From assembly GCF_964194025.1 (NCBI RefSeq), contig NC_134475.1:21886001-21950000 (forward strand): DNA of 64,000 nucleotides, read 5' to 3'. This stretch comes from Convolutriloba macropyga. Lineage: Eukaryota. Numbering within the stretch: the first letter of the stretch is position 1; each line of letters opens with the position of its first letter. Position numbers and translations under genes: made by a program. The notes under the pieces are model-generated. The model was not told the DNA's origin. It saw only the letters and a program-made list of their open reading frames with translations, and made no database searches. This document shows, piece after piece, positions 8,683 to 52,137 of this stretch.

Positions 8683-11600
8683 CTACGGAGAAAAAACGCG
8701 TGCGAGACCGGCAACGGGGCGAACGAACGTGCCGTAAGCCGTTTTTAACTTTACGACTCGTGTTTCTCCATCTCGTCCTGGCGTTGTCTCCATGACTCTT
8801 CCCAGTGGCCAAATGCCTCTTGGTGTTTGGTCTTTCAACACCCAAACAATGTCGTCCACTTTGAGAGGTCGATCGTTGCTGTTTGACCATTTCGACCGTC
8901 GGCTAAGCATTGGCAGATACTCTTTCACCAAGCGTCGCCATATATGGTTCATCAGCTTCTGCGTGTTCTTCCATGTCTTCAATCTTGCAGGTTGCTGGTC
9001 TCCAAATTGTCCTGGTGGCAAGCTATTGAAGGGACGCTGGATAAGAAAGTGGTTTGGAGTCAAAGGTTCCTCGTTGTCAGGCTGCTCAGCAACGTTAGTC
9101 AGTGGTCTGGAGTTGAGGATTGATTCTGTTTCCACCATAATTGTTAGGAAAGTGTCAAAAGAGAGTCTTCTGGATCCTAGAATGAGGGGAGCGTTCTTTT
9201 GGCGCTCTGGATCAAACGCTCCCAGACACCGCCAAAATGAGGGCCGTATGGGGGATTGAATTTCCACGTTGTATTGGCTACTGCTAAAGCTTTGTAGATT
9301 CTGTCATTGTCCAAGGCTTTAACAGTTTTCTTCAGTTCTTCAGAAGCGCCAACGAAAGCTTTCCCGTTGTCGCTGTAGAGAAGTTGGGGCTGGCATCGAC
9401 GACTGCAAAATCTTCTGAAGGCATTGAGAAACGTATCTGTATTGAAGTCTGGACACGTTTCTAAGTGAACTGCTCGCGTCACCATGCATGCAAATATTAG
9501 AACATAATGTTTTTCTAAAATGCCTTTGGAATCTTCGATGTAGAAGGGTCCAAAGAAATGTACACCAGAATTAGCAAAGGGAACTATGTTTTTGCTGTTG
9601 GAAAACGAAAACTAGGTAATGGTGCCATAATTGGTTGAATGTTTTTCGTGTCAAAGCGTCGACATAAGAAACAATGAAACCGTACGCTTGCTAACCCTTT
9701 CCGAAGGCCAATCACATGGTTACGTTGTTGAATGAATGCTTTTGTTGGTTCTGTGGACTGGTGAATACATATTTGATGCGCATGTTCCAAGTACAAACGA
9801 ACAATGTTGTCGTGGGCGTGCAAAATTATTGGACGTTTTTCCAAATCCAGTTGTGTTGGTGCATACTGCAATCGACCACAAGATCTGAGTAATCCGTCCT
9901 CATCTGAGTAATCCGTCAACAGCGGATTTAAGCATCGTATTTTGCACTTAGAATCTAGTTTGATTCCACGTTGTAAGGAATTAACGGTCGAATGGAAAAA
10001 ACTGTCCTGAGATAATTTGAGGAGATAATTTCTTGATAATTGAATGTCTTCAGTTGTGTATTTGTGATTGTTCGTTCGCATTTTCTTTGCACGATTAATT
10101 AGGTTGAAAACTGTTGCAACTGTCAGAAGAAGTTTGTTCCATGTTGAGAATTTACTCGGATCGACTAAAGGTTTAATTGTCTTGGGACTTCTCGTGACTG
10201 CCGCACATGTTGCGCGTGGTTTGTTTATCTCATTCCAGGTCGACTCGCTTTGGCAAAGAAACTGGGGTGGATCTAACCATTTCTGCTGAATTTCGTTTGT
10301 CTCAAGACCGCGAGTTCCGTGATCGGCGGGATTGAGATAAGTTGAGATGTGATGCCATTGCTGGGGTGAAGAACTCTTATGAATTTCTCGCAATCTGTTT
10401 GAAACAAAAACGTTTTGCTTCTTATTTGAGGCTATCCAGTCCAAAACTAATTGACTGTCGGACCACAGAAAAATTTGGTCGAATGTCAGTGTCATTTCTC
10501 TTTGGATAAGTTGTAGAAGGCGCACTTCTATAACAGCGGCTTCTAGTTCCATTTTTGGCACTTTTATTTATTTATTGGGAGCAACTTTGCATTTTCCCAT
10601 GAAAAAACATGCTTGTGGCGTAGTGGTTTGACTATTGGTTGTACGGAGGTAAGCAACGGCTGCCATAGCTGCCATTGCATCCACAAATATATGAAGTTGG
10701 CTGCTTGTGATTTTACTGAAATTGTGAACAGTTCTTGGTATTCGGATTTCGGGCATGGCAAAGTAGCTGTTTAGAAATTTCTGGAGGTCATGGTGTAGTT
10801 CATGTGGTATCAAATCATCCCATTTTCTTACAAGTTTCCAAATCTGCTGCAAAACCATTTTGATTCTAATTGTCAGGGGAGACAACAGACCGAAGGGATC
10901 GAAGATTGAAGATACCAAACTGAATTTTTTCCTTTGTGTGTACACTGTTGCATCTTTAGGAAATTGTTGTAGGGGAAACATGACAAAATCGTCAGTTGTT
11001 ATGTTCCATTTTTGACCAAGGACTCTTATGATCTCTTTTGTTTTGTCTTTGTTGTCAGAAGAGATTTCAGCGAGTACATCTGGTTCGTTCGAAACAAATT
11101 TTGTCAACCTGAAGCCACCATTTTTCAGGCATCTTGTTGTCTGTGATATGACTTCTTTGGCTTCTGAAATTGTTGACAGGGACTGGATGTAGTCATCCAT
11201 ATAAAAGTGTGGTTTAATAGCGTTCAAGGCGGCTGGAAATTCACTTTTGTTGTCTTCTGCACGTTTATTGAGCACATAAATTGCGCAAAATGGTGAACAT
11301 GTTGCGCCAAAGATTAATCTAGTGAATTGGAATTGTCGAATGGAGTTGTCTATCATCCAAAGAAAACGAAGAGCAGACTGGTCTTCTTGTCTCACGGCAA
11401 TCTGCATAAAAGTTCCTTCGATGTCTGACAAAACAGAAACCGGGTGTTCTCTGAATCTCAACAGCACTCCAACTAAGTTATTTAGCAAATCAGGACCAGT
11501 TAGAAGATTTGTGTTCAGTGATTCACCGCGGAATTTTGATGCTGCGTTGGCAACTCTTCTCACTTTTCCGGGTTTGTTTGGATTAGTGACTGGATGATGA

Positions 11601-14600
11601 GGTAAGTACCATATTGACTCGGGGGGTGGTGCTTGCATTTCGACTGGCTTGACAAAATTTTTATACAAGTCTGTTTGGAGTGTCTGGTTGTACTTCTGAT
11701 TTAGACCGGGATCGTTTTGTAGTCGTTTTTGTAGACTTTTTAGTTGACTGACTGCTGAGAGATAGTTATTCTGGAGTTTCTTTACAGGTTTCCAAGGAAG
11801 GCCAATCTGATATCTTTAACCGTTGTGACAGATTGAGTTTTCCATTGTTTGCACTGCTAATTGGTCTAGTGAGCTGTCTTCTTTCTGTTCGGGTAATGTA
11901 CCTTCAGCTTCTTTTTTCCAGAATCTGTGAACCAATTCGTCCAATTGTTCTTCTTCAATGTCTTTCCGGCAGACATGGTTAATGAATGGTTGGCGAGGGG
12001 TCTTGTTTGCGTTCATTATTTTAGGAGATAGCTCGTACTCTCCAGCGAGAGTCCAACCAAGCATTGTTTTTACTCCGAATGGACGCTTTTTGCTACCTTG
12101 GATTACGTCGATTGGATATGTGAAGGCAAACGTATTGACACCAAGAAGGGCGCCTATTGCACCGTTGGCTATGTCAGGGAAATAAATGTGACTAAATTCC
12201 TTGAAGGTGTCGCATAACTGATTGAGTTCAAGAACGTTAGCGGGTGATACATTGAGACATGACGTGCTATAGGCTCTTGCAATGCTGAAGTGTTGATTAA
12301 TTTTGTCATAAGGCGTTACTCACTGTTTCACTAATTTTGGACAGTGGCATTTCATGTTCAGTGTTTAGGTACTGCAGAGTTGTTGATGCTTGTGCTTCGC
12401 TGGGAAGCTCAAGAAAGCTAGTAACTTTATCCAGCAGGAAGGTGAACTGGCTTCCGGGGTCAATCAAGGCGCAGGTATCAAACACTTTACTGCCGTTTAC
12501 AAATGAAAATGGTATTATTTGTAGTTGTTCATACCATTCAGGAGGAATTGTATTTCGGTTGATACTGAAGTTTTGGGTCGGATTCGAAGCATTCAAACGG
12601 GCGCGTTGAATATTTTGTTGCTGTGATTGTCTTTTACCAGAAAACGATCGACCGTATCTTGTCTGCTGGCTCTTTGTACTGCTGACAGTGTCAGTACTTT
12701 AAATTTGATTTTGTTGTTGAAAGGATGGCTGTGTTTGGGGGCTTGCTAGATTTTGTGTCGGCTGATTCGGATTGCTTGTTGAGAAGGCAGCGGTGGGCCG
12801 CTTAACTTGTTTCGGAGGATCATGCAAAGTTGTGTGGTGAAGTCCTTTACATGTTTGGCATCGTTTTGTGGACGGACATGACTGCTTGAAATGTTTGTTG
12901 CTTAAACAGTTCGAGCAAAGATTGTTCTTGCTCACAATGTTATACCTTTGGTCTGGCGCACATTTCTGGTATTCAGGGCATGTTGCGAGTATGTGACTTC
13001 CTTTGCATTTCTCGCAAGACTTGTTTGACTGATCAGCATCGTTACGCGGAGGAAAGGGTGGTTGACCATGCTGGTTTGCAGGGCGACTTGAGTGCAATGA
13101 ATTCGGTTTCCAATTGTTTTGTGAATTATTAGAAAATTGATTCATAGCATTGCTGTTCCTATTATCATTGTTGTTGTTAATTCTGCTAATGCTATTACTG
13201 TTTTGACCGAAAGTGTTCCAATTATTAAACGGCTTATGAACATTTTCTCTGTTGATTTTGTCGTATACTTGGGCCTGTACTTCAAGCCACTTCTGAAAAT
13301 CAGAGACGGTTGATTGATTTCCAATTGATGTTATTGTATACTCTGTCCATTTTATCAGAATATTATGTGGAATTTTTTCTTTTGCCTTTTTCATCAATGT
13401 TGAACTTTGCAAGTCGGCTTTGAAGCCTAAATATTCAAAAGCTTGCACTAATCGTTTGAGAAGGGAAGCAAAAGATACGAAACTCTGTTTGTTGTAGTCA
13501 TTGTTCGGACGCCAGGCTTCCAGTTGATTGATGAAAGCATTCACAACAATGCTGGGATCTCCAAAGTGATCCATGAGCTCTTTCAAAGCAATCGCGTAGT
13601 AAGCTGGGTCACATGAGTAGGCTTGAATTTTTTCTTTGGCTTTTCCTACGACCGAGTTCTGTAAGTATGTTATACGGTGTGTATCCGTAAGGCTAGTATT
13701 AATGTGAACTAGGTTGAAAAAATTGTTTATCCACTCATGGTATTTCAGTGGGTTACCATTGAAATTTGATATAGTTATTGGTGGAAGTTTAATGGAATTT
13801 TTGTTTGTGGTTTGTAAATTAAAATTATTTTCAAACGGGATTGTTTCTGTTTGTATTTCAGTTCGTGGCTGAAACAGTTGCTTTCCAGAAAAAGACAATT
13901 TGGAATTTGTTTCGACTTTCCCGAAATGTTTGGTTGGCTAATATGTTGAGTAAAGGGGGGAAGAATGGCTGTTTGGTAGTTTGTAAAGGGATTTTCCGGA
14001 GTAAGCGGACAATTAAGTGGCTGAGATGATGTACAGCAAACAAGGTTGGTACCTTGGTTGTTGAGTGTTGTATTGGAGGGGAGAACCCATTGGTGGGTTC
14101 TGAAATTGTTGGGAAACGTTTGTTTGCGCTACTGTTCGTAACGACATTGCTGACGCCAATTTTCCGCTGTTCTGGTTTTCACTTATTGGAACAGCTGAAA
14201 GTTGAGTGTTTGAAACAGTTTGAGCAGTTGCACTTTGATTGTTGTCAAAATGTAGGGGATTGTGACGACTGTCTTCGTAACAATATGGATTTGGCGTGGT
14301 CTCATTTGTCACTCTATTTGTTCCTTTTTCTGAATGAAATTGACGCTGAAGCATTTGCTCATTCAAATTGCATGAACTTGATGTTTAGTATGTATTGGTT
14401 TTGTTAACTGAGCAGTTTTGTTGAAGTGAGTTTTGTAAATCTAATGCAAGACGTTCTATGCTTTGATCTTCTCTTTTGTTGTTTAAGGGAACAGAAGACT
14501 TTTTTTGGTCTAACTGTGGAATTTGCTGGTTGATTCATTGGCATTTCGGGCAATGTGATCAGTTTTGAACTAGAGAACTGGTTCAATTCTCCAATTGATG

Positions 14601-15465
14601 AGTGAATTAATTCCGGCTGGTTATCAATAGATTCAACAGGAAATAAGACTGCAGTTTGATTCATTGGAATGGAGGGTTGTTGAATTGAAGCAAACTGGTT
14701 GAAAGTGTTCTCTTGCTCTGTGAGAACAACGTTGTGTTCTGGAGATTGAGGATTATACAAAACAAATATGTCCTGAATGTTTGCTCTGAATAATAGGGTT
14801 GATGCTGGTGTTGGGGCTGCTAACAACGACATTGATTGATTTATGAGTTCAACCGTCGTAAATTTTTTTACTGATACTTCAGTCAGTTCTCTAGTATCCT
14901 GCGCAAATTGTCTGTTGCTCTGAAAGGATTTGGAGAGAAGGTTGGGTTTATTTTCTACTTGCGGAAGGAAAAACGATGGTTTCGCCGGTCTTGGGGGCAC
15001 TGGAGGGGAGACATCGCTGGCAGGTTTCTTTACTGTCATGTTGTTTTGCTCTGAGTTTTCGGAAACCGGTGTCAATCGATGCGACTCGAGCTGTCTTTTT
15101 GAGGACTGTGAGACGCAGTTGATGTCATCGCGCACTCGAGTTGATGATTGACTCAATTGACCATCATCGTCGAGACTGTTGACTTCTAGTTCCAATTTTT
15201 CTAGACGGGAGATCAAGTTCGATTGACGTTTCATGACTGAGTTTATGCTACTAGAGCTTACTTTTTCCATCATGATGCTGTCAATGTTTGTCTTCAGCTC
15301 TTCAACGCTCTCCTTGATTTTGTTGATCAACAAAGAAAGAGTGCGGAAGCTTTTTCTCTGCTCCACGGATGTCTGTAAGAGATCAAGCTGATTTTTCATG
15401 TTGAGCTCAGTCATTTTGAACTTGTTCAATTCGTATTGCAACTTCTGGCTGTTTTCTTTTGTCAT
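8683..15465 (-). pseudogene. BEL/Pao gag-pol polyprotein broken by stops and frameshifts
   Basis: Coiled-coil/low-complexity N-terminus (14013-15465). DUF1759-type gag LPPITISNFNGNPLKYHEW plus three Cys/His knuckles (12699-13898). Aspartic protease ALIDPGSQ (12306-12596). RT WYLPHHPV...FYMDD (10568-11668). RNase H (Peptidase_A17) PKMELEAA, WSDSQLVL, NPADHGTRG (9584-10761). Integrase RAVHLE, SDNG, HFGGVWERLI, LNSRPL, WPLGRV (8683-9485). Confidence 0.95.
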
Positions 15466-18811: not shown

Positions 18812-18889
18812 TGGTTGAAATAAAATTTGGTTCAGGTTGAAATAAAATTTGGTTCAGGTGAATCAATTGGTTCAGGTTCGCACGTGCGT
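18812..18889. repeat. Short tandem repeat (22-bp ggttgaaataaaatttggttca) ending in gcacgtgcgt; probable small non-autonomous element
   Basis: Tandem copies are directly visible. The same terminal gcacgtgcgt follows a different tandem array (agatctggca) at 7496-7579. Confidence 0.5.
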
Positions 18890-19302
18890 TGAAATAAAGT
18901 CGCCGAGTTGATGAGAGCTAAGCTCGAAATTGAATTCCTTTAAAATTTGGAACAACCTTATTGAAGTAAATTACCTCAAGAGTTCAAGACCGAGCTTCAA
19001 AACCCGGTGAGATTGTTCTTGATCACCCCCCCCCCTCCAACGTCGTACCGCCGCTAGCCCTTTAAAAAAAGCAGTCGAGTACTGCAACAGAAATAGCCAC
19101 AACGGGGAGGACACTTCAGAGAAAATTTTTGTCCTATAAATTTTTGTCCTAAAAATTCCTCGGCAAGTCATCAAAAAAGCAGTGGTCAACAACAACACGA
19201 TCCAAATTCTAGCTATCGCAAAAAAGAACCTTCGTTTCGGGAAAGCACTTCGTTTTTTTTACGATTTGCAATCCCCCGTATGATATAAATACAGTTTCGA
19301 AT

Positions 19303-22300
19303 ATGGGAAAAAAGAAATACAATCTAAGAAAAACTGTTGTGAACGATAGTGTTCGTCTGCAAATCCAGTCTCAAGATAATGCTAGCTCACGAGACATCAT
19401 TGATGACTCTGACCCCATCAGTGATGCAAATACTGGTTTGACGCAAAACTTTCAAGACTTGAGTGTAAAAGAGCAATTCCACACAACACCAGGAACCATA
19501 CTTTTTATCCCCGACACTGTCAACAAACTCTATAAGGTGCAAGTGTTAGAAAACTCGGGGCATGAAACCAAAATTAGATATAGTGGTTGGGGCTCAGAGC
19601 ACGACACGTGGTTTAATGCGAAATCAGTTTGGGCCTATTCGAAGCACAAACATAACTTGAAGAATCGCAAAAAAATAACAAAAGAAATTTCAGATAAAAT
19701 TGACCTACTCCTCGCGTCGTGTGAGCAGAACCAGCTTGATGATAATTTCTTTGAAAACGTTGAACAAACAATACTGAACGAGAACAAAAAGTTGCCCTCT
19801 TTACAGACAATAGTTAGTTCACATGTTCCAACATGCCGTTTCGTTCCGGTCAAATTTAGAACTAAGTGGTCACAACTGCTAACCAGCATCCTGGATGATT
19901 GTGCCACAACACCAGATGACGAACTAAATTGGCAGAAATTGTTTTCTGTTTCGAAGTGTATCCTGCGTGCGAGCAACCGAGGAGGTAAAAAGCATAAACG
20001 AAATCAGGATCAGCGGCTCTCCGATCGCATCGATCGATGGAATGCGGGTGAATATGCAAACCTTTGGACAGAAGCTTTGGCAATGAAAAAAGCGAGGAAA
20101 AAATCCACAAACGGAATAGAAGAATTAGCCAGTAGAGCTAAAAGTCTATGTTTGCAAGGTCAATTTGGTCGCGCCGCAAAAATACTGTCATCTGAGGGAC
20201 TTGCACCTAATAACAGAGGTACTCTGAAAGCACTAGAAGAGCTACATCCCAAAGAAGTGCCTCCAACTTTGCTCCAACCAGACAATGTTGCTTCAAGTGC
20301 GTATCAATTTAGTGATAACATAGTTTTTGAACAATTGAAAACTTTCAGCAAGTACACTGCAGCTGGTCCTTCCAAGATGTATCCAGAACATCTATTGCAC
20401 GCAGTAGAGTGTACTGCTCCCGACCACTCTGAATCCGCCCTTAAAGCAATAACAAGGTTTGTAAATACAGGAAGCAGGGGTAATTTCCCTTCATTTGTTT
20501 CAAAAGCCCTCTGCAGCGCATCGCTCACCGCTCTATCCAAAAAGAAAGGAGGAGTACGTCCAATAGCTGTCAGTGAAATCCTGAGGCTTCTGATTACTAA
20601 ATGTTTGGTGAAAGAAGCAAAATCAGAAGCAATTGAGTTGTTCGATTCCATTCAGCTAGGGGTTGGAGTCAGCGGAGGTGCGGAAGCAATTATCCACTCT
20701 GCAAAAATCACCTACGAAAAGATCCTCAACGCTGAATCTAATGAAGGAGTGCTTCAGATTGATTTCCGAAATGCCTTTAATTCGGTTAAGCGTTCACACT
20801 TATTGCAAGCAGCATGCGATTTCATACCAGGTATCGCAGCCTTCACATATTTTTGCTACTCTCAGCATGTGCCACTACTGTACAATAACGCCAGTCTTCA
20901 AAGTGAATTGGGTGTTCAGCAAGGAGATCCCTTGGGTCCACTTCTCTTTTCGTTGACGTTATGGCCTGTTATAGAAAAAATAAAAGACGCGGTTCCAAAT
21001 CTTACCCAGCACACTTGGTATTTGGACGGTGGTTTTGTTGCAGGTTCAGAAGATCAAATCCAAACTACGCTCGATATCTTAGCTAATGAAGGTCCAAAAA
21101 GGGGTCTGTACTTGAGGAAAGACAAGTGCGAACTCTGGTCAATCGTAGATCTACCTTCAGTTGATCGAGAAGTTACAAGAAATATGGGCAATGGTTTTGA
21201 AGTACTGGTTGCCGCAGTCGGATCACCAGAATTTGTTTCTTCTTGCCTGCAGAAACGTGTTCAGAAGGTTGTGTCGCTCTTGGATAATTTGAGTTATCTG
21301 GATGATCCTCAATGCGCTCTCGGCATACTTCGTTATTGCCTAGGGACACCAAAGTTAGTCTACTCTATACGCACTAACACGCCGACAAGACATCTGATCG
21401 ATGTTTTAAAAGTTTTTGATTCCAGCCAACGGGATGCGTTAGATCAAATAATAGGTGCTGTCACCTCTGACAATGCGTGGTTGCAGTCAACTTTGCCAAT
21501 AAACAGTTCAGGCCTCGGAGTGCGACAATCGCAACAGCAGTACAGAGCCGCATATGTGGGCTCAGTGATAGCATCTGATGACTTGGTTCAGAAAATTACA
21601 AACCAGCGCGCGTCAGACAGTAGAGTTTTTAAGGAACTCTATGCAAGCCTTGAACCTTTCAACTTAAATTCCTACACACAGAAGAAAATTCAAGAAGCTG
21701 TAGATACTGAAAAGTTTTCAGAGCTGCTAAGAAATCAGTCGTCAAACAGGGAGAAGGCAAGACTGCAATAACTCTCGTTGCCTCATTCCGGCGCATGGCT
21801 TGCGGCACCTCCAGTTCCTGCCTTAGGTCTCCATATGTGTCCCAGTGAATTTCAAATTAGTGTCAAATACAGACTAGGTATTGCAGTTTATGAAGATGAA
21901 AGAAAATGCCCTTACTGCAGGTCTGGGACCCTTGACATTTTTGGTGACCACGCCGTCATCTGTCCCGGAAGAGGGGATGCAATTTCTCGGCATGACAGGA
22001 TTCGTGACCGTTTTGCATCAGCTTGCTCAGCAGCTAATTTGTCCCCAGTCATAGAAAAACGGAACCTTTTTGCAGGAAACGGTTCTCGCCCTGGCGACAT
22101 TTGGTTGCAGTGGAGAAGTTACGGTTCTCACCGTAACTTCTCCACTGCAACCAAACATTATAAATCATGCGGCAGAGAAGTCTGGTTACGCGATTGAAGC
22201 AGCCGAAGAGCGAAAGTATACACAACACGAAAATGATTGCTCTGAGCAAGGAATTTTGTTTGTTCCCCTTGCTGTTGAGTCATTGGGTGGTCTGTCAGTC

Positions 22301-22456
22301 ACTCTCAAGAAAGCGTTAAAGCGCATAGCCCTGTTAGCTGACAGCAGGAATTATCAGTCGCAAGGACATGCTATCGCTTTTGATAGATTGGCTCAGTCGG
22401 TTTCCGTTGTGATTGTACGAGGATCGGCTACAATGTTGCTTGCACGAGTCCCGTAA
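19303..22456 (+). mobile_element. CRE-clade-like non-LTR retrotransposon ORF (chromo-barrel-like domain + RT + CCHC/restriction-like endonuclease), inactivated
   Basis: RT motifs GGVRPIAV, QLGVGVSGGAEAIIH, IDFRNAFNSV, GVQQGDPLGPLLF, WYLDGG (catalytic DD changed to DG). C-terminal CPYC...DHAVIC, RHDRIRD, RPGDI, EERKY, FVPLAVESLGG. Premature TAA at 21769-21771 and a frameshift near 22100. Confidence 0.9.
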
Positions 22457-22827
22457 CCCCAATTTTTGCAAGATTTTTGGACAAATTCTATTTCCGCAAA
22501 CATTGTGAACTCCAAGAAGAAAGGAGTCTTTTGAGAAGCGTCACCCAATGAGAGGGGACCTTCGTTTCTGTAAATATTGTCTCACCCATTGAGCGGGGAG
22601 AACATAAATAATTTTCAAGAGTTCATAGAAGATTGAAACGAGAAGAGTTCTGAAACTTAAGGATAACAGGACTGATGTTATAGAGTGCGATTGAGAAGAG
22701 TGAAGAATTCTTCAACAAAAAACACACTTATTTGAACCTTTAATGAGCAAAAACTTTTAATTCCGAATCAAAGTTTGATAACAAAGATTTGTATTAATTC
22801 ATTAATTTATGTGAAAAAAAATGTCTT

Positions 22828-37122: not shown

Positions 37123-37398
37123 ATGAGTAAAGCAGAGGATCAGTTAGAAACAGGCGGGGCAATAACTGACTTAGTGTTTGATGATAATCACCATGAAAGA
37201 CGATCATGGAGGTTTTGTAATTCAAGGATACCACGATCAGAAGTTGTTTATTTTACACAAGTTTTTATTATAATTTTTCTCATAATAGTTTATTTGGTAA
37301 AACTTGTGTTTTTCCAGCTTGAATGTGAAGAGTCTACATTTTGGTTTTCTCTTCTTTCTTGTACAGTTGGATACGCTCTTCCCAACTCAAAATTATGA
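37123..37398 (+). CDS. Small two-TM membrane protein typical of Polintons/adintoviruses
   Basis: RSEVVYFTQVFIIIFLIIVYLVKL and FWFSLLSCTVGYALPN hydrophobic segments; lies directly upstream of the ATPase. Confidence 0.75.
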   Translation: MSKAEDQLETGGAITDLVFDDNHHERRSWRFCNSRIPRSEVVYFTQVFIIIFLIIVYLVKLVFFQLECEESTFWFSLLSCTVGYALPNSKL

Positions 37399-38126
37399 AT
37401 AAAATCATTTCAACAACTGACCGGTTGTTTATGGCCGTTTGCGGTCCGTCATGTTGTGGAAAAACAGAGCTCATTTTCAGAATGTTACTCGACAACACTT
37501 TTTCTCCAAAGTTCCTCTCGATTTTTTATTTCTACCAACATGAACAACCCAAATTTAAGTCACTAGAGGCAAAATTAAACATACAGTTTACCAAATTTTC
37601 AAGCTTCGATTTGATATCGGAGCTCGAAAACTGTCTGTTGGTGTTTGACGGTTCATGTGAAGAGATTTTTAATGACAAAGAGTTTTCGAAATTGGCTACA
37701 GCAGGACGTCACAAAAACATTAGTGTAATTTACGTAAAACACAATTTATTTCAACAAAGTAAATGGTCACGAACTATTGATCTTAATACAACACACATCA
37801 TTTTATTTAAATCACAACGTGACATTCAACAGATTGGTTTAATTAGTCGACAGCTTAATAACACGCAATTTTTGAAAGATAGCTACGAGCTAGCAACCAA
37901 ACAACCCTTTGGTCATTTACTGATCGATCTGGATCCAAAAACATCGGACGTTTTGCGTTACTGCTCCAATATTGTTCCACCAGGACCATCCGTTTTTTAC
38001 CCTCCCCCAGCTAAAGCTGTTATAACCAATTTGAGTAATGAGAGAGAAAGAGCTTTGTATGCTGCGGCGAATGTTAGAGACATCGGACATAAAGTCAAAA
38101 GAACTAATCAAGTCGGTACCAAATAG
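37395..38126 (+). CDS. A32/FtsK-like DNA packaging ATPase
   Basis: Walker A GPSCCGKT, Walker B LLVFDG (DD changed to DG), AGRHKNISVIYVKHNLF, RTIDLNTTHIILFK, PFGHLLIDL. The ATG at 37395 overlaps the upstream stop (ATGA). Confidence 0.93.
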   Translation: MNKIISTTDRLFMAVCGPSCCGKTELIFRMLLDNTFSPKFLSIFYFYQHEQPKFKSLEAKLNIQFTKFSSFDLISELENCLLVFDGSCEEIFNDKEFSKLATAGRHKNISVIYVKHNLFQQSKWSRTIDLNTTHIILFKSQRDIQQIGLISRQLNNTQFLKDSYELATKQPFGHLLIDLDPKTSDVLRYCSNIVPPGPSVFYPPPAKAVITNLSNERERALYAAANVRDIGHKVKRTNQVGTK

Positions 38127-38322
38127 TTTTATTAACTTTCTTTGCGAGTGTTTGCTTAATGTTGTCAACGGTAACGTTCCCGTCAAGAAAACATTAATAC
38201 AAGGTCATGAAAATTCATTTAAAAAACTTTTATCTAAACAAACAAGTTTAAAAAAAGGCAGATTTTTGCTAAAAACACGGTTCTTTTGAAAGGTATTGCT
38301 CTCTCGTGTTACCTTCATCTGA
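38038..38322 (+). pseudogene. Conserved small basic Polinton protein (FLCECLLNVVNGNVP), frameshifted near the 3' end
   Basis: CECxLNxxxGNVP motif followed by a basic helix, recurrent in Polintons downstream of the ATPase. Confidence 0.65.
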
Positions 38323-38332
38323 GGAAGTGATA

Positions 38333-39138
38333 ATGTATACTGAAGAATTTATCTTAATTCCCAAAAGAATGTTCATGTCAACACAACCGGCAAAAAGTGA
38401 AATTTTTGACAATCCTGTCTACAAACAGAAAGCGACCCAATTGTCTCTCATTCAAAGAAACATAATACAAAATCCGGAAAAAAGTGAAAAAGAGGATGGA
38501 GCAGTCCAGACAGAACCCAGCATAAATGTTGAAACAGATCATGAGGAAAAAGAGGAGCCGATGAGAGATGACAGTAAATTGAACCTATTGTCAAAAAAAG
38601 TACAACTACAACGTTTCAGTCATTAATGAGAGATTTGGGAGTGATGGAGAAAAATAAAATCGGAAGAGCAGAAATCATTCTCAACAAGATATTACAATCC
38701 CCGACAATATCCATTGAAGATTCAGGTGGTATCATTCATATTGATAACCAACCACTTGGCTTAAAAGCGTCAACTTTTTTGTATAACACACAGCAGTCAA
38801 CAAAGAAAATTGACATTCAAAAATATTCTCGAGCATTATTAGCTCTCGATCTTCCACCTCATTTAGTTTCGAATACCTATGCCAACCAGATCTTGGAACC
38901 ATCCGAAAGCGAAGAAGAAATTTTTGCAAGACCACGAGGACAATCAGGAAGCGGTTATCAAGTTACCAACCAAAGAAAAACGGGCACAAGAAAAAAGACG
39001 GCAGAAGGAGAGACCAAACAGCAAAAATGGTCTTACTTCTTCCGAGAAAAAAACGTTGGACCAACTGTATTTGAAGGGACCTGCATCGTTTGGAAACCCA
39101 AAGCGATTAAAAACCCAAAGCAAATTATCATTTGGTAA
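38333..39138 (+). pseudogene. Polinton hypothetical protein upstream of the integrase (split into two ORFs)
   Basis: MYTEEFILIPK... (38333-38626) and ...RAEIILNKILQSPTISI...IHIDNQP... (38626-39138); probably one frameshifted gene. Confidence 0.55.
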
Positions 39139-39921
39139 AGTTAAGACATACTTGGAAACCAAGTCATCTTTTACAAAATATCGCCCAATTCGTTTACGAT
39201 TTCCCAGACTTAAAGTAATAGTAAAAGACATAAATGAAATTTGGTCCGTTGACTTGGCTTATGTGGATAAACTAGCAAAATACAACAGAAATGTTAAACA
39301 TTTATTGGTTGCGGTCGACTGTCTTTCCAGATACCTTCGTGTGGAGCCCTTAAAAACAAAGTATGCAACGGAAACTGCCTCGGCCTTGAAAAAAATGATA
39401 AAAAACAAGCAACCACAAAAGTGTGGGTTGATTATGGTACAGAGTTTCTTGGAGTCTTCAAAACCTTATGCAACAAACGAAAAATTCATTTATACAGCAC
39501 TTTTAGTGAAAAAAAGTCTGCATTCGCAGACAAGTACCTTGAAGAAAAGTGGACATACTGCTACATTGATAAACTGGATCAATTTGTGAAAACAATTAAC
39601 TCACGGGTCAACCGCGTAACCAAACTTGCTCCAAATAGGGTCACTAAAAAGGATGTTCCACGACTTGTCTCTTTGAGCGCTCAACTAATCAAGTTTCAGA
39701 GACCCAAATTTTACGTTGGAGATTTTGTTAGAATTGTCAAAGAGGACGAAGCCTTCAGGAAAGGGTATAAACAATCTTTCACCGACGAAGTATTTGAAGT
39801 AGAAAGCTTAGCAGCCTTTATTCCACCAACGTATTCACTTATTGATGCAAACGGTGACAAAATTGAAGGCAAATTTTATCAACCAGAGTTACAACTTGTT
39901 CGTATTGAGAAAAATGAGTGA
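39020..39921 (+). pseudogene. Retroviral-type (RVE) integrase, frameshifted, catalytic Glu segment apparently deleted
   Basis: LYLKGPASFG, EIWSVDLA, LLVAVDCLSRY, (W)VDYGTEF, EKKSAFA[missing ER...]KYLE, INSRVNRVTKLAP, FYVGDFVRI, FRKGY, GKFYQPELQ. Start approximate. No C-terminal chromodomain. Confidence 0.92.
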
Positions 39922-40801
39922 AAACCGTTTCACCGATGAATTCACTGTGCAAGTTATTTCATCTGCTTCAATGGAAATTTTTGACTCTAACACTCTTAGT
40001 TCATTTCAAAATTATTTCAATGATGAAATTCAACTCGCTGGTGACTGGAGAGTAGCTCTCAGTTAGATCATTTTCCCCACAAAAAATGAGCTTATTGTAA
40101 ATGGAGACATGGTAGTATATAGCTTAAAAGGGTACGAAGACATCCAGAAAAGGGCTACAGAAGCCAATGTGATCTCTCGTCCTTATAACGTTGAAAAATT
40201 GTCTATCATGACAGGAACTTATAACTCAGTTGTTGACATACTAACTACTATCAAACGAACTGTTGGACTACCAAACTTTGCATTCAGAGAGATCAAGAAA
40301 ACTGGAAAGTTTGAAATATTGATGGGGAAAAATGAAGGAATTACTTTTCCCAGTAAAGAAATTCCGAGCATTATCGGTTTTTCGGGCATTCCAGATGGCA
40401 GTGGAGTACACATAGGGTACAAAATGAAAAGCGCAACATCAAACAGACTAATGAAGAGTGATGAAACGGCAGCATACTATGGAGATTTTCCCGTTGATCT
40501 TTGCTCAGGAAAGCACTTAATTTTTATATATACGAATACTATTGTATACCAGTACGTCGGTGATACAAAAGACCCCTTGCTTCGAGTCATTGATTCAAAA
40601 CAACGTTTGAAAAACGGTAGTGTCTGGGAGCTTGAACCAACTCATCGAATTGTTTTTTCCAATTTAGATTACAAAAAACTCTTATCAAACACCATACAAT
40701 CAATATCGATTGAGCTTCGCACAGAAACGGGAGAATTGGTTCCCTTTTCGGGAACCGGTAAAGTCATTTTAACCCTTCAGTTCAAAAAATTTTCCAATTA
40801 G
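39914..40801 (+). pseudogene. Minor capsid protein (penton, single jelly-roll) with one internal TAG
   Basis: FTVQVISSASMEIFDSNTLSSFQN...WRVALS*IIFP continuing in frame to IFIYTNTI..QYVGDTKDPLLRVI...ISIELRTETGELVPF...LTLQFKK. Confidence 0.88.
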
Positions 40802-45770: not shown

Positions 45771-47872
45771 CGACTTATTTAATATTGAATTGCTTTTCCT
45801 TTGCACTTTGGTGTGTTGTGTTACTGGCTTTTCTGAATAGCTCTCTAATTGACACTCGTCTTTTAATCTTTTTTACATAGCTAGCAGACTTTAGAATCAG
45901 AATTTTACAAAAATAAACATGTTCAAACACGTTCACAAAAATAGTATCGTTTAGTTAGACAAAGTTGGGGGAAAATTTCCAAAATGGACATGTTCAAACG
46001 TGTTCGAATATATAGCAGGAAGCAAACAAGCTTCTGATTGGTTGAGAGAAAATTTGTTGAGAAAGCTATTGAAATGTAAAAATAGGTTTGAACAAAAGCT
46101 TCAAAAAATGCATAAAGTCCTTATCAAACAAAAACTTCATTTAGCAAATCGTTCTTCGTATGCTGATATAATATCAGCGCTCCTGTTGGGTATACCTTCA
46201 GGTGTTAGTTAAACTAGTAAAACATCATTTTTTCAGCAAAAAAGGAGGAAAAAAAGCGATTTTTCCGGTTTTTTTGCTTTATAAATTTTTTTTGACGGAA
46301 CGAAAACTCAAAACCTGAAGGCCATCACCAACTGTTTTTTGTGGGCTACCGATATGAATAAAAAAATTGACCACATTTCTTATAAAAAAGTTGAAAAAAA
46401 ACGAAAAATTTTTTTTTGTTTTTCATGGTGACTTTTGACCCCAGAAAAGTCGGCTCCAACAGATAGTTGGGATGAAACTGACTATTGGGTTGACACTATC
46501 AGACACTGTACTACAAAAAAGCTCATAACGCTCGTCAAAATAAACTCAATCCTTCATCAGATAATTAACCATTAATTAACAGCTAATTAGCAGCTAATTA
46601 GTCTAATTAGTGATTAACAAAAAAAATTCCCATTATTTTAAACGGATTTGTAATCATTGGTACATGCTTGTCACTTTTGGTCATAAGGGTCAGGGTCGAA
46701 AAACGGCTCCTTCACCGATTTTCAAAACATCTGGACATTAACGTCTCATTAACATCTGGCATTAATTAGCAATTGAAGTACCCGAAATAATAATGATACA
46801 CCAGGTTTTTTCCAAAAAACCGATTTTTTGGGGGCTGGAGACAAAATCATCTCATAACAGCTGTCATCGAAAAATGCTTGCAACAGGGGGCTTGTCATTG
46901 GCTGTCATGTGATGACATTGATTGATCATGATTGACAGAAAATCTAACTTTTTTCCTGATAAAGATGAGGGATTTTTTCTTGTCGGGTCCTACATTTTAG
47001 TGCCCGGGGAGCATTTTTGGTTATGATGACCAACATCGTCCGACGCACCCATCGGCATCTACAGTAAAAAAAACTACAAAAATCGCTTTTTTTTGCAACA
47101 TTAAGCGAAAAAAACTGAACATTTCATTTGCTTTTAGTAGATTTTTTAGCTGTTCAAACACCGTGACAGTAATAAAACTGTGCATGATAACCGTCCAAAG
47201 CATCCCTTGTACTTAAAATTTAACAAAGTGTACAAAAAAGCGATGTTTTTGCAATATTATTCAAAAATTCTATAGAAATCAAATCAAAACTTTCTTTTTA
47301 TGTAGGCTACTAGTGTGTAATATTACATCTAACGGGTTCAAACACAAATGTTTCCTCTACCCTTATGTCATTGGAGCATATTATCTATGAAAATTAAGAA
47401 AAAAGATTAAAATATTTGATTGAAAGATCATTAAAAATTCATAAAAGTTTACTTTGACTAAACCTAAAAGTTAGCAAATCAAAAAAATTGCAATTGATAA
47501 GCATTGTTACCTCACATATAACTAATAACTAAAAGGAACTACCCCTGGTTTTAAAAAAACCTTTTTATATACTGTACTATTAATTCGAAAATAACAAACA
47601 AGTTTTGTCATGTCAGTGTTGTTCAGTGAGAAATGTAAAGTCAAGCACTGTTTTACGTTCAACGCAACTTGATATGTTCATAGTAGTTGACTAAAGCGGG
47701 GACGCGCTCCTATTATCCAATCAAATTCGAAAATTTTGAAAGTTTTTGAATTACGCGCGTCTTATATGAACCTCGTGTGGAATAGAAATAAATTCGCCAT
47801 TTGAAGTTGAGTTACATGTTTACGAAAGTTGTCATTATCTCTGTTAACTTTTGAATCTTGAATTTTTCGACT

Positions 47873-50800
47873 ATGGTTTTCAATTGCAAATATTGTTCGG
47901 CAACTTTTGCAAACAGAGGAAATCAATCTCGCCATGAGCATCGCTACCATCCCGACGAAGTAGGTTTACCAGTCTTTACCTGTTGTATTTGTACATTCAC
48001 TTGTAGAAAACTTTCTGAACTGGAACAACACATGAGGACTTGTCATCAAAAATTTACAAATTGTTGTCGGTTCTGCTATATGGGTTTTAACAACACCAGA
48101 TTATTTGCTCAGCATATGAGTTCTTTGCATTCTTTACCTGTCTTTGGCGATCAATTCCAACCAACTCAAGCGCCGGCCGAAACTGCCTTTAATGGTACCC
48201 TTCAGAGCTACCATCTGCCGCCATCACCAACCCAAGCCAACACAATCCTTGCTCAGTTCATGTTCCAGCATAAACCACAAATCAATTCGCTTATAGAACA
48301 AAAACTCTCACAAGGATCACAAAAAGTTCAATTTAGTGCTCATCTTCAACTCCGAAAGCCAAGTCAAAACGAAGATCAGGAAGATGAGCTTATTGAAATT
48401 TATGCAAATTCGCTCATGACACCGGTGTATAGTCAGGGAATTAGCAGTGAGACCTTCTGGACTATGGTCGAGAAGATGATGATAGTGCTAACGACATTTG
48501 CCTCTAATGGTAGTGGTTAGGTGCTTGAGAAAGTTATCAAAATAATTGTGAACTTTGCCCGTTACCGACCTATAACCGGCTCGTCTTACATTGCAATACC
48601 ATCAAAATTACAAAATTGCCGCAGTTTACTTAATATTCGTAACCATGAGGACGCAAATTGCTTCCTTTACTGCTATGTTGCTGCATATCATATGCACAAC
48701 AATATTAGCTTAGATCGACCAGGAAGGAACTACAACACAGACAAAACTTCACCCGAAACTTACAAGCAAGCCAACCTTCATCAACCAACTGGACACTTCG
48801 ATATGCCCATGGGGCTAGAAGACATCAATCAGTTCGAAAATCTAAATGAAGTTCGAATCAACGTTTTTGGTTATGATGGTAGAGACTTATTTCCACTCAG
48901 AGTCTCAAACTTCACAATGGACCTATTGCTTTTATACGAAGCAGACTGTTACCATTATGTGTTGATTACCAACTTGGTTAAGGTAGTCTGTCAACTCCGA
49001 AATACCAAATTTTGCTTTACGTTTCATATTTGCCGGAAATGTTTCTGGTTGTGTGAAGAAGGCCTTGCAAAGCTTACCGCACATATGGAAACCTACTGTG
49101 AAAATGCGCCGGCTGTTTTCGATTACCAGCTCCGGGAAAAATATTTATATAAATTGAAAAACTTAGCCGCTACCTGGTTTGTTCCATTAGTCATTTACTT
49201 TGACTTCGAATCCTTCTTGTGTCCAGTAGCAGGATGCACGCTCCACGGGAACAACTCATACACCAGAGTTATTGAAAAACACGAGCCCTGTGGGTTTTCA
49301 CTTGCGGTAATTGATCACTACTCAACAAAACCCATCTTCTTCCACGTGGACAGCTCTGAAGACTGCATTACTAAATTTGTAAACATGTTACACACACTAG
49401 CCAAGGATATATACAAGCGCAATTGAGCTTTTCCTTTCTTCAGAGGTGACCGTAGCCAGTATCCGAAAAGTGCAGCTAGCGAATGTTGGATATGCAACGA
49501 AGCCTTTGACGATAATGATGAACAATCATCAATTGATCTGGATCACTGCCACTACAGCGGACAATTTCTTGGCTGGGCTCATGAAAAATGCAATCGAGCA
49601 CGAAGGAACGTCAACTTTACCCCTGTGGTGGGTCATAAAATACAAAATTATGATCTTCATCACATTTGTTTAGCCCTCCAATCTTGTGAGCCAACGACCA
49701 CTGTAAGTGTAATTCCATCTAGTGATGAAAAATACATTTCCATGAATTTTGGAGTACTCGTGAAGACCATAACCCTAGATGATGGAAAAGTGATCAAAAA
49801 GTACGAAAATCTGAGGTTCATTGATTCATTCAAGATGATAAATTCGTCTCTCGAAAAGTTGGTTGACATTTTACCAAGAGATCGTTTTGGAATGCTTGCT
49901 TCTGTCTTTCCTAACCTATCCTCAACAGAATTGAAGCTCCTGCAGCAAAAAGGATATTACCTCTATTCATATGTTAGCGGTCGAGAAAAGTTCAGCGAAA
50001 AATCCTTACCGCCTCTTAATGAATGACGTAACACTTTAGAAAAAAACGCAGTAACAATAACTCAAGAAAACTTGAACCACGCCAAGACGATGTGGAACAC
50101 TCTGAATTGCCAAACTCTACAAGACTACCACGATGCATACCTGAAAACCGATTGCGCTCTTCTCGCATGCGTTTGTGAATTCCACAGAGAGCTCAGTTTC
50201 TCCACCTACAAACTCGATTGCATGCACTTTTACACACTGCCAAATATGGCTAAGGAAGCATCCTTGAGAATATGCAAGGCGGAGGTCGAATTGCTTACAG
50301 AACGCGAGCACCTCGATATGATAGAAGGAGCAGTACGTGCGGGAGTATGCTCAGTCTACGAGATGAGAAAGTTTAGAGCAAATAACAAATATTTACCAGA
50401 TTACGACTCTTCATAACCCTCGACATTTGGCTTCTGCGTGGACGCCAATAACCTATACGGTGGCGTCATGCAAAATGAAAAACCCCTCAGTCAGATTTTA
50501 CGCTGAACTCTGATATTACACTGGCTGAGATACTAAACTGTCCTGATAATAACCCTGTCGGTTACTTCGTGGAAGTCGACTTGCATTATCCAGCAAGTCT
50601 ACACGATTACCATCAGGACTTCCCCCTCGCACCATCGAAAAATATTGTTGAGGATGACTGGCTCAGTGACTACCAAGTGAATTTGCGAGAGAGTCATAAC
50701 TTACCCCCCTCAAAAGTTCCAAAACTGTTGCAGACTTTCTTCGACAAAGAACATTATGTGCTGCATTACAAGCTGTTGAAACTGTATGTTAACTTGGGAT

Positions 50801-52137
50801 TAGTAGTGAGGAAAATGCATCGTTATATACGTTAACACCCTATATAACCCTGAACAGTGAGAAGAGACAAGCGGCTTCGAATAAATTTGAGGAGAGTTTC
50901 TATAAACTAATGAACAACGCCGTTTATGGGAAAAACTGCGAATCGAAACGTCGACGGATGAAAATCGAGCTTACTAGAGACGCAAGACGAACCCTAAATT
51001 TAGTAAGCAAGTTTGAGTTTGATACATTCAAAGTGTTTGGCGAGAACATGGCAGCTCTCTCCTCCCGCCCAAAAAAGATCTATTGGGATACACCAACTAT
51101 TGTATTGGCCACAATACTTGATCTATCGAAATACTACATGTATCAGTTTCACTATGGAACAATGCGATCTTCATTTGAATGTCGATTACTTTATAGTGAT
51201 ACTGATAGCTTGCTATACCGGATCAATTGTGAAGATCTCTACCGTGAACTGAAGGAGAGCAATGTTCTTGATCAATTCGACTTCTCAAATTACCCAGAAG
51301 ATCACGAACTGTACAGCGAAGAAAATAAGCGCGTCGTCTTAAAATTCAAAGATGAATTTGCTGGGGATTATATAAAAGAGTTTATATGCCTGAAGCCAAA
51401 GCTGTACAGCATTACTTCCACTAGTGAGTATTTTACGTTTAATGATTCAAGAAAAAACTAACAAAGTACCAACTAACCTTGTATGATTGTCATAATTTGA
51501 CTGCTTTTTGCTGTTCACAGGTAACCGAAAAAAGACCGCCAAAGGAATAACAAGAGCAGCCCAAAATTTGCTTCGACATGCTGACTACAATAATACACTT
51601 GTGACTGGTAGTACACTGCGCGCTGAAAACACAAGGATTGTTTCGGAAAAGCATGTTCTACAAACGGTTTCAACGAATAAAATATGTCTCTCTGCTTTTG
51701 ATAATAAACGCCACATTTTGAACGAGGGAATTAAAACACTACCATTCGGCCACTATAAAATTGATCATTGCCGAGTCGAAGATTTTTCTTGGGATAGCGA
51801 TGAAGTAGAGTGGGACTACGAAAATGTAGAAAATTATGCTCACCTTCTCCTAGATTCGAGTCCAAACTGGGAGCATAATAATAGTTTTGTTGTACCGGAT
51901 ACAACAATAATTGAAAGCCCGGAAGAATGGGAAACACCTGACCCGGGATTTGCAATGACAAGTATTATTAACGAGGACGATATTGATAGCGATGATATCG
52001 TAGATTTCGATGCTACCACCAGCTCCAGCTCTTCCTCCCCTAACCCATTCATTAATTATGAAGCTAATGAGTGCAGTGAAAGTAGTACTAGCGATTATGA
52101 AGAAGAACCAGCATTTAAAGTTGCACGCAGACAATAA
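47873..52137 (+). pseudogene. Protein-primed family B DNA polymerase (pPolB) with three N-terminal C2H2 zinc fingers, an Endonuclease VII-like insert, one intron and an acidic tail; multiple stops and frameshifts
   Basis: CKYC..HEHRYH, CCIC..HMRTCH, CRFC..HMSSLH; GSSYI, INVFGY, VIYFDFES (ExoI), CWIC..DHCHYSG..AHEKCN, H(K)IQNYDLH, RFIDSF, YLKTD, DANNLYG, KLMNNAVYGK, YSDTDS, KFKDE, LKPKLYS, TAKGI. Confidence 0.96.
51424..51520 (+). other. Predicted 97-nt phase-1 spliceosomal intron in pPolB
   Basis: GTGAGT donor, two ACTAAC branch-like motifs, pyrimidine tract and TTCACAG acceptor. Removal restores LKPKLYSITSTSNRKKTAKGI in frame. Confidence 0.88.

Follow-up and report, generated by a model that had tools for sequence, protein, structure and literature searches.

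Organization of the retrotransposon

The DNA analysed here (the window) is a stretch of 64,000 nucleotides from the acoel Convolutriloba macropyga (contig NC_134475.1, positions 21,886,001 to 21,950,000), and all coordinates below are counted from its first letter unless another sequence is named. Positions 18880-22820 on the forward strand are occupied by a retrotransposon that lacks long terminal repeats (non-LTR retrotransposon) and has one open reading frame (ORF). Near its N-terminus, ahead of the reverse transcriptase (RT), the encoded protein has a segment which an original prediction, made from the letters by themselves, had read as a chromo-barrel/Tudor-type reader domain standing where such elements normally carry zinc fingers. 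The results below indicate that this segment is a Royal-superfamily barrel common to a whole family of elements and that it may steer where they land. The limits of the element were defined against its further copies in this genome (1.18 Gb), and its features are as follows.

18826-18879 (+): 5' junction filler of 54 nt, a patchwork of short flank-like repeats, not in the empty-site allele
18880-19302 (+): 5' untranslated region (UTR), beginning with GCACGTGCGTTGAAATAAAG; the onset of homology is sharp, at 18877-18882, across more than 20 copies whose upstream flanks are unrelated
19303-19473 (+): variable N-terminal tail, residues 1-57, of which the start, M(G)K.(N)YNLR, is conserved; dN 0.47-0.77 and 31-41% amino acid identity between subfamilies
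19474-19668 (+): predicted Royal-family (chromo-barrel/Tudor-knot-like) domain, from profile, structure and language-model searches
19498-19617 (+): predicted beta-barrel of the Royal domain, residues 66-105
19618-19668 (+): predicted C-terminal helix of the Royal domain, residues 106-122
19669-20538 (+): linker and N-terminal RT extension, with the clade-wide motif LP.L.TI....P(T)(C/L)RF(V/I)P(V/I)KFR..WS.LL and without a zinc finger
20539-21138 (+): RT core, residues 413-612 (Pfam RVT_1, E 4e-14)
21769-21771 (+): premature in-frame TAA stop, read through in intact sister copies
21907-21963 (+): CCHC zinc knuckle CPYCRSGTLDIFGDHAVIC
21964-22456 (+): restriction-like endonuclease (RLE) domain up to the end of the ORF (stop at 22454-22456), from a C-terminal profile against the R2 RLE, E 6e-10
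22457-22820 (+): 3' UTR, then a short stretch differing between copies, then a run of about eight A; the 3' limit is taken from the empty allele

The ORF of the window copy (19303-21771) starts with ATG and encodes 822 amino acids up to the premature TAA. Intact ORFs of the family have 1036-1056 amino acids (1056 in the sister copy L044:580-3747:-), with the domain order Royal domain, RT, CCHC knuckle and RLE. The 3' end lies at about 22808-22820, and across copies the variable short stretch leads into 7-14 consecutive A. The RT resembles R2 only remotely, its nearest solved relatives being R2 proteins (E 1e-6). A C-terminal profile, built from the last 260 residues of 25 relatives, matched the CCHC and RLE region of the solved R2 proteins 9nl3, 9dou, 9nl2 and 8gh6 with E-values down to 6e-10, with C, C, H, (C), E, (R)P.D, D and K as its invariant positions. 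No AP-endonuclease (Exo_endo_phos) was found in the element protein by Pfam at E<=1. Because of the RT, the C-terminal CCHC/RLE match to R2 and the missing AP-endonuclease, the element is assigned by homology to the RLE-type (R2-group) non-LTR retrotransposons, and the earlier non-LTR call holds, with RT, CCHC knuckle and RLE in one ORF. The window copy itself is predicted to be dead, having both the TAA at 21769-21771 and, inside the nuclease core, a net 17-bp deletion (about 22100-22127) that takes away some of the RPGD...D core and causes a frameshift.

Identity of the N-terminal domain

Positions 19489-19632 on the forward strand translate into PGTILFIPDTVNKLYKVQVLENSGHETKIRYSGWGSEHDTWFNAKSVW, which corresponds to residues 63-110 of the ORF. 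This is exactly the peptide quoted in the original prediction, in frame with the RT as claimed there. Pfam returned only a weak MBT match on the ORF (residues 79-109, E 0.016-0.24), whereas a domain profile built from three subfamilies was much more informative. Against all sequences of the PDB it gave 35 matches at E<10, and 33 of them were Royal-family domains (MBT, SAWADEE, EAF3/MRG chromo-barrel or ARID4), headed by L3MBTL3 and L3MBTL1 with E-values of 0.002-0.005. In a search of 1.84 billion representative proteins (hmmsearch), the same profile had 78 matches at E<=1e-3. About half of these were more diverged N-termini of transposable elements (TEs), and the remainder were cellular proteins, many with several repeats, matching the TE profile with E-values from 1e-13 to 1e-4. 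At Pfam thresholds, the matched parts of the cellular proteins qualify as Tudor-knot, MBT, MSL3_chromo-like, Agenet and SAWADEE. An hhalign comparison of a TE-only alignment with the cellular domains reached a probability of 98.6% (E 5.5e-16, 56 ungapped columns), the cellular set having been picked from the TE profile's own matches, so that the unbiased figures are those of the 1.84-billion-protein search.

AlphaFold2, run with a 51-sequence alignment, returned a model with a predicted local distance difference test (pLDDT) score of 83.8, consisting of four strands (12-16, 22-31, 34-39 and 48-51) and a C-terminal helix (52-68). In Foldseek, nearly all of the top 50 PDB matches of this model were the PHF20L1/PHF20 Tudor, L3MBTL1/2/3, SCM, Sfmbt, MSL3, MRG15 and SETDB1 (best match: E 2.6e-3, probability 1.00), and the structural matches in the Swiss-Prot part of the AlphaFold database were of the same kinds. 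A language-model search with the single window sequence placed a Tudor-knot/MBT cluster first (0.88), followed by MSL3-chromo, Agenet, Spin/Ssty, PHF20L1 and SAWADEE clusters.

Taken from profiles and models, the N-terminal segment is predicted to be a true Royal-superfamily barrel of the chromo-barrel/Tudor-knot/MBT type. The chromo-barrel/Tudor-knot branch is probably the best fit because of the barrel-plus-helix layout. The domain assignment of the original prediction was thereby borne out by the cellular Royal matches, by hhalign and by the resemblance of the AlphaFold2 model to PHF20L1, L3MBTL, MSL3 and MRG15; of the profile check it had proposed, the match to Royal domains was obtained, whereas the Pfam gathering threshold was not reached.

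Conservation across the family

Within the genome, no fewer than 150 scored places (862 candidates) encode the barrel, which removes the earlier worry that it might occur in a single copy. At least five subfamilies (A-E) with intact ORFs, 52-71% identical overall, all carry it at the N-terminus. Between subfamilies the amino acid identity is 59-70% in the barrel and 62-79% in the RT, as opposed to 31-41% in the N-terminal tail, and between the sublineages A1 and A2 the dN/dS of the barrel is 0.24. The domain is thus a regular part of the family and, judging from the substitution pattern, under purifying selection across it, as five intact subfamilies and the dN/dS indicate.

More diverged barrel-bearing versions were present in the ENA assemblies ERZ25071359 and ERZ25071366, which represent a related, non-identical genome; the unique flank of one such version (L079) had no match in the genome of the window. 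At three places (C10:59260237-59270042, C3:61834906-61839409 and C13:9445531-9450741) short open frames with the B-type barrel follow one another at a regular spacing of about 2-4.7 kb, suggestive of 5' element fragments that were amplified in tandem.

The residues that would form a reader cage are among the conserved ones. Cage-type positions in the ORF are Y77, Y93, W96 and H100, together with the invariant D71. In domain numbering, D17, Y23, Y39, W42 and D47 are invariant in subfamilies A-E, while position 46 is H, H, Y, Y and F in A, B, C, D and E, respectively. The HMMER alignment places Y39, W42 and position 46 opposite F, W and Y of "HFDNWDDTYDYW", which belongs to MBT repeat 2 of L3MBTL1; we take this F, W and Y to be the cage residues F379, W382 and Y386 of L3MBTL1. 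A basic stretch (KHKHNLKNRKK or equivalent) follows the barrel in all subfamilies.

The N-terminal slot in relatives

Targeting by RLE-type long interspersed nuclear elements (LINEs) is thought to depend on DNA recognition by N-terminal zinc fingers and Myb domains. All early-branching LINEs are stated to possess a ZF/Myb/-1 region (PMC5678591). In the acoel family, a pattern scan of residues 1-400 of subfamilies A-E found no C2H2, CCHC or CCHH pattern, the C-terminal CCHC knuckle being the only one, and Pfam at E<=1 had no zinc-finger or Myb match in the element protein; the absence of an N-terminal zinc finger, as first noticed, is therefore upheld by two empty searches.

A full-length search gave at least 120 relatives with 24-46% identity, including those from dinoflagellates, a springtail and an octopus; no trypanosomatid protein was among the 120 relatives listed. 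By BLASTP and HMM, the barrel was not found in the 120 RT relatives listed from elsewhere, except in P0001, which comes from the same or a near genome, and P0001 was also the sole match of a region-restricted search of 5.8e9 proteins. RLE-LINE relatives with 28-37% identity share the conserved pre-RT motif and have other modules upstream of it: a Cys-rich CxRCNRxGxCxxCxC motif (P0006, P0008 and P0009), SAP (P0033 and P0051), PHD (P0044 and P0068) or PHD together with an RFX DNA-binding domain (P0042). Because relatives carry such different modules there, the N-terminal slot of this RT clade is, on domain assignments, modular, and at least two kinds of predicted histone-reader fold occupy it in different lineages. 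The Royal barrel appears to stand in for the DNA binders normally carried at this end, in keeping with a swap of modules. So far as it concerned a reader in the place of zinc-finger targeting, the original prediction agrees with the barrel's position and with the other modules in relatives; its further step, insertion guided by histone marks, keeps the standing of a suggestion.

Four relatives (P0063, P0065, P0069 and P0072) have a UCH protease domain downstream. Among the nearest matches to the barrel outside the LINE family, P0181 (L094:367-1504) directly follows an rve integrase ORF and P0171 (L091/L092) lies near Gypsy-like RT/integrase fragments; both are possible integrase-linked chromo-like modules akin to the barrel of the LINE.

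Insertion behavior and recent mobility

The flanks of 25 copies were unrelated to one another, without a positional consensus and with a GC content of 35%, as typical of the window. Target site duplications (TSDs) of 6-10 bp were present in some copies and differed in sequence, and the A tails were short. No spliced-leader (mini-exon) gene or other fixed target, such as would go with the "CRE-like" label of the original prediction, was found among the copies checked, their flanks being unrelated. Insertions are thus dispersed and not sequence-specific. Some 5' junctions have extra nucleotides which partly repeat the first bases of the element. In L002, L003, L019/L046 and L022 a partial extra copy of the first 8-14 nt (GCACGTGCGTT) stands a few bases before the true 5' end, and these partial repeats look like template-switch filler at the junction. 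The conserved 5' GCACGTGCG was considered as part of a CACGTG target site and rejected: most 3' flanks do not have it, and its upstream partial copies are filler-like.

The empty site was analyzed in four public runs from one study (X1-X4), all behaving as DNA. One contig joins position 18825 to 22821, with 11 nt (AAAGATTGAGT) replacing 18826-22820 and with single-nucleotide polymorphisms in both flanks. In run X1 the flank depth came entirely from this empty form, as against about half of it in runs X2-X4, and only in the latter three was the filled 5' junction detected; the flanks of the filled and the empty haplotypes are about 5% different. The window insertion is a presence/absence polymorphism. 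The family has therefore moved recently, since the insertion is missing from the other haplotype, and several intact ORFs that are 98% identical to one another agree with this. The element was not found in any public run on record as RNA.

On the chromosome-scale contigs, 14 of 39 family A copies were located in the outer tenths and 27 of 78 D/E copies in the central fifth, among the matches listed, and among these the positions of A and D/E differed (Kolmogorov-Smirnov p 0.005). The difference is only a hint and could reflect age, selection or targeting.

Proposed function of the barrel and alternative explanations

The barrel occupies the slot of the target-DNA-binding module of R2-group proteins, and its aromatic positions align with those forming the methyl-lysine cage in MBT and chromo-barrel readers. 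By analogy, the barrel may steer the landing site of the element. In the proposed mechanism it would tether the ribonucleoprotein (RNP) of the element to nucleosomes bearing a particular methyl-lysine mark, and this tethering would bias the choice of sites for nicking by the endonuclease and for the onset of target-primed reverse transcription. We infer such methyl-lysine tethering from the position in the targeting slot and the conserved cage positions, and hold it about evenly balanced between right and wrong. Reading of histone marks and guidance of insertion are plausible from the cage positions, the analogy and a weak, confounded chromosomal hint. A wider version, in which an RLE-LINE clade has an exchangeable N-terminal homing module and the acoel lineage and the PHD-bearing relatives separately switched to reading histone methylation, is a tentative extension that we consider rather doubtful.

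Several points weigh against a methyl-lysine reader, some of them concerning the fold itself. The best Pfam MBT score is 12.1-15.8 bits, below the gathering cut-off of 22. The alignment behind the model with pLDDT 83.8 contained cellular Royal domains, and with a TE-only alignment of eight sequences AlphaFold2 reached a pLDDT of 61.5 and Foldseek was uninformative (E>0.3). Even for the better model, the Foldseek E-values are only 3e-3 to 6e-2, and its VIA-align Z of 6.4-6.5 to an MBT repeat, the SETDB1 Tudor, MRG15 and PHF20L1 is not decisive alone, being below 8, a level that a generic small barrel may reach. As to the cage, subfamilies A and B have His rather than an aromatic residue at position 46, and subfamily E has DEM in place of DEW. 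Copy age and selection confound the chromosomal skew, which comes from the matches listed. Nucleic acids, too, are bound by chromo-barrel/Tudor-knot domains, namely those of MOF, MSL3 and Esa1.

The main rival is that the barrel binds nucleic acid and reads no histone mark, either through a non-specific affinity for DNA that replaces the zinc-finger/Myb module or by holding the element's own RNA, and we give it a real, if clearly smaller, chance than methyl-lysine reading. Tudor-knot, the nearest Pfam family by transitive matches, carries the description "RNA binding activity-knot of a chromodomain"; moreover, the basic residues that come next to the barrel in every subfamily, the plain DNA binders (SAP, RFX and Cys-rich) in the slot of relatives and the sequence-nonspecific insertion would all suit such a role. 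The conservation of cage-type aromatics across subfamilies only 52-57% identical overall speaks against it, however, as do the PHD fingers, which are histone-tail readers, in the slot of some relatives. The Royal family also includes methyl-arginine readers, such as the Tudors of SMN and TDRD, and the barrel might instead be a protein-protein adaptor unrelated to histones that binds methyl-arginine or methyl-lysine on a host factor. Candidate partners would be the piRNA/PIWI pathway, a replication/repair factor or nuclear import, with a role in RNP assembly, nuclear entry or evasion of silencing. SMN/TDRD-type Tudors are indeed among the structural matches (Z 5.1-5.5), and a published survey suggests that the capture of readers may help TEs to escape suppression (10.1101/2021.11.30.470311). 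We nevertheless regard both the adaptor and these partners and roles as unlikely, since the profile matches favor the Tudor-knot/MBT/chromo-barrel branch over SMN-type Tudors and the targeting-slot position suits a chromatin or DNA role better.

A chance resemblance or a decaying relic, that is, a linker without fold or function or a one-off capture in the window copy, could be suspected from the sub-threshold Pfam matches taken alone and from the low-confidence first AlphaFold2 model. Against this stand the presence of the barrel in five intact subfamilies and hundreds of copies, a dN/dS well below 1 with conservation on par with the RT, E-values to 1e-13 against bona fide Royal domains and the hhalign probability of 98.6%. 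This explanation is very improbable, with chance resemblance excluded by the conservation and the profile statistics.

If the wider version with an exchangeable homing module is true, no earlier LINE lineage would have had its targets chosen by a histone reader that the element itself encodes, and each of the subfamilies A-E would be adapted to a chromatin compartment of its own. RLE LINEs such as R2 serve as the model of target-primed reverse transcription, and work to engineer them for inserting genes is under way. A recently mobile lineage with a reader in the slot, and with PHD, SAP and RFX there in relatives, would show that the slot is modular and would allow a direct test of whether chromatin state steers a LINE, as it does chromoviruses and retroviruses. 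It would also extend the known capture of chromatin domains by transposons to a further type of reader and a further class of element.

Comparison with known systems

The acoel element resembles the R2 group (R2, R4/Dong, NeSL/Utopia, HERO and CRE) in having one ORF, a central RT, a C-terminal CCHC with a PD-(D/E)xK RLE and no AP-endonuclease, as well as short TSDs and extra nucleotides at 5' junctions. While R2, R4, NeSL and CRE are typically site-specific, the acoel element is dispersed; it has a predicted Royal barrel where the R2 group has N-terminal zinc-finger/Myb domains, and its RT is distant (E 1e-6). HERO and some other RLE elements are likewise not site-specific (PMC4640811, PMC3636483).

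With chromoviruses (Ty3/Gypsy, e.g., MAGGY and Tf1) it would share an element-encoded Royal reader on the enzyme that chooses the insertion site. In chromoviruses the chromodomain guides integration into chromatin bearing H3K9me (Gao et al. 2008, cited after 10.1101/2021.11.30.470311). Chromoviruses, however, have LTRs and an integrase with a C-terminal, canonical chromodomain, whereas the acoel barrel is N-terminal, of the chromo-barrel/Tudor-knot/MBT type and joined to RT and RLE for target-primed reverse transcription. No integrase or LTR was found in the element, which has an RLE and a 3' A tail instead.

Cellular readers (MRG15/EAF3, MSL3, KAT8, Tudor 1 of PHF20/PHF20L1, ARID4 and L3MBTL1/3) have a similar layout of 4-5 strands and a C-terminal helix, and share the signature (K/R)(I/V)(R/H)Y.GW...D.W and the aromatic positions that in the acoel barrel would form a putative cage. 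The acoel barrel differs from them by an identity of only 15-24%, by His at one cage position in A and B and by its fusion to a retrotransposon protein.

A search confined to the available literature found no RLE LINE described as carrying a Tudor, chromo-barrel or PHD domain. The survey of Grau-Bove et al. counted 823 fusions of TEs with chromatin domains, mostly Chromo and PHD, with PYGO-like PHD fingers in several retrotransposon classes, and in the part available to us it names no Tudor-knot/chromo-barrel at the N-terminus of an RLE LINE (bioRxiv 10.1101/2021.11.30.470311). The original view that the architecture is undescribed was thus kept for this particular combination and given up for reader capture by retrotransposons in general, which that survey had already published.

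Other mobile elements in the window

Remains of a BEL/Pao-type LTR retrotransposon, with Peptidase_A17, RVT_1 and DUF1759 gag-like ORFs, lie on the reverse strand at 9584-15465. On the forward strand, 37341-40801 and about 47858-52137 contain ORFs matching a poxvirus-A32-like ATPase and an rve integrase, consistent with a Maverick/Polinton-type element. The ORF at 47858-48517 has weak C2H2 and SUZ12-Zn matches.

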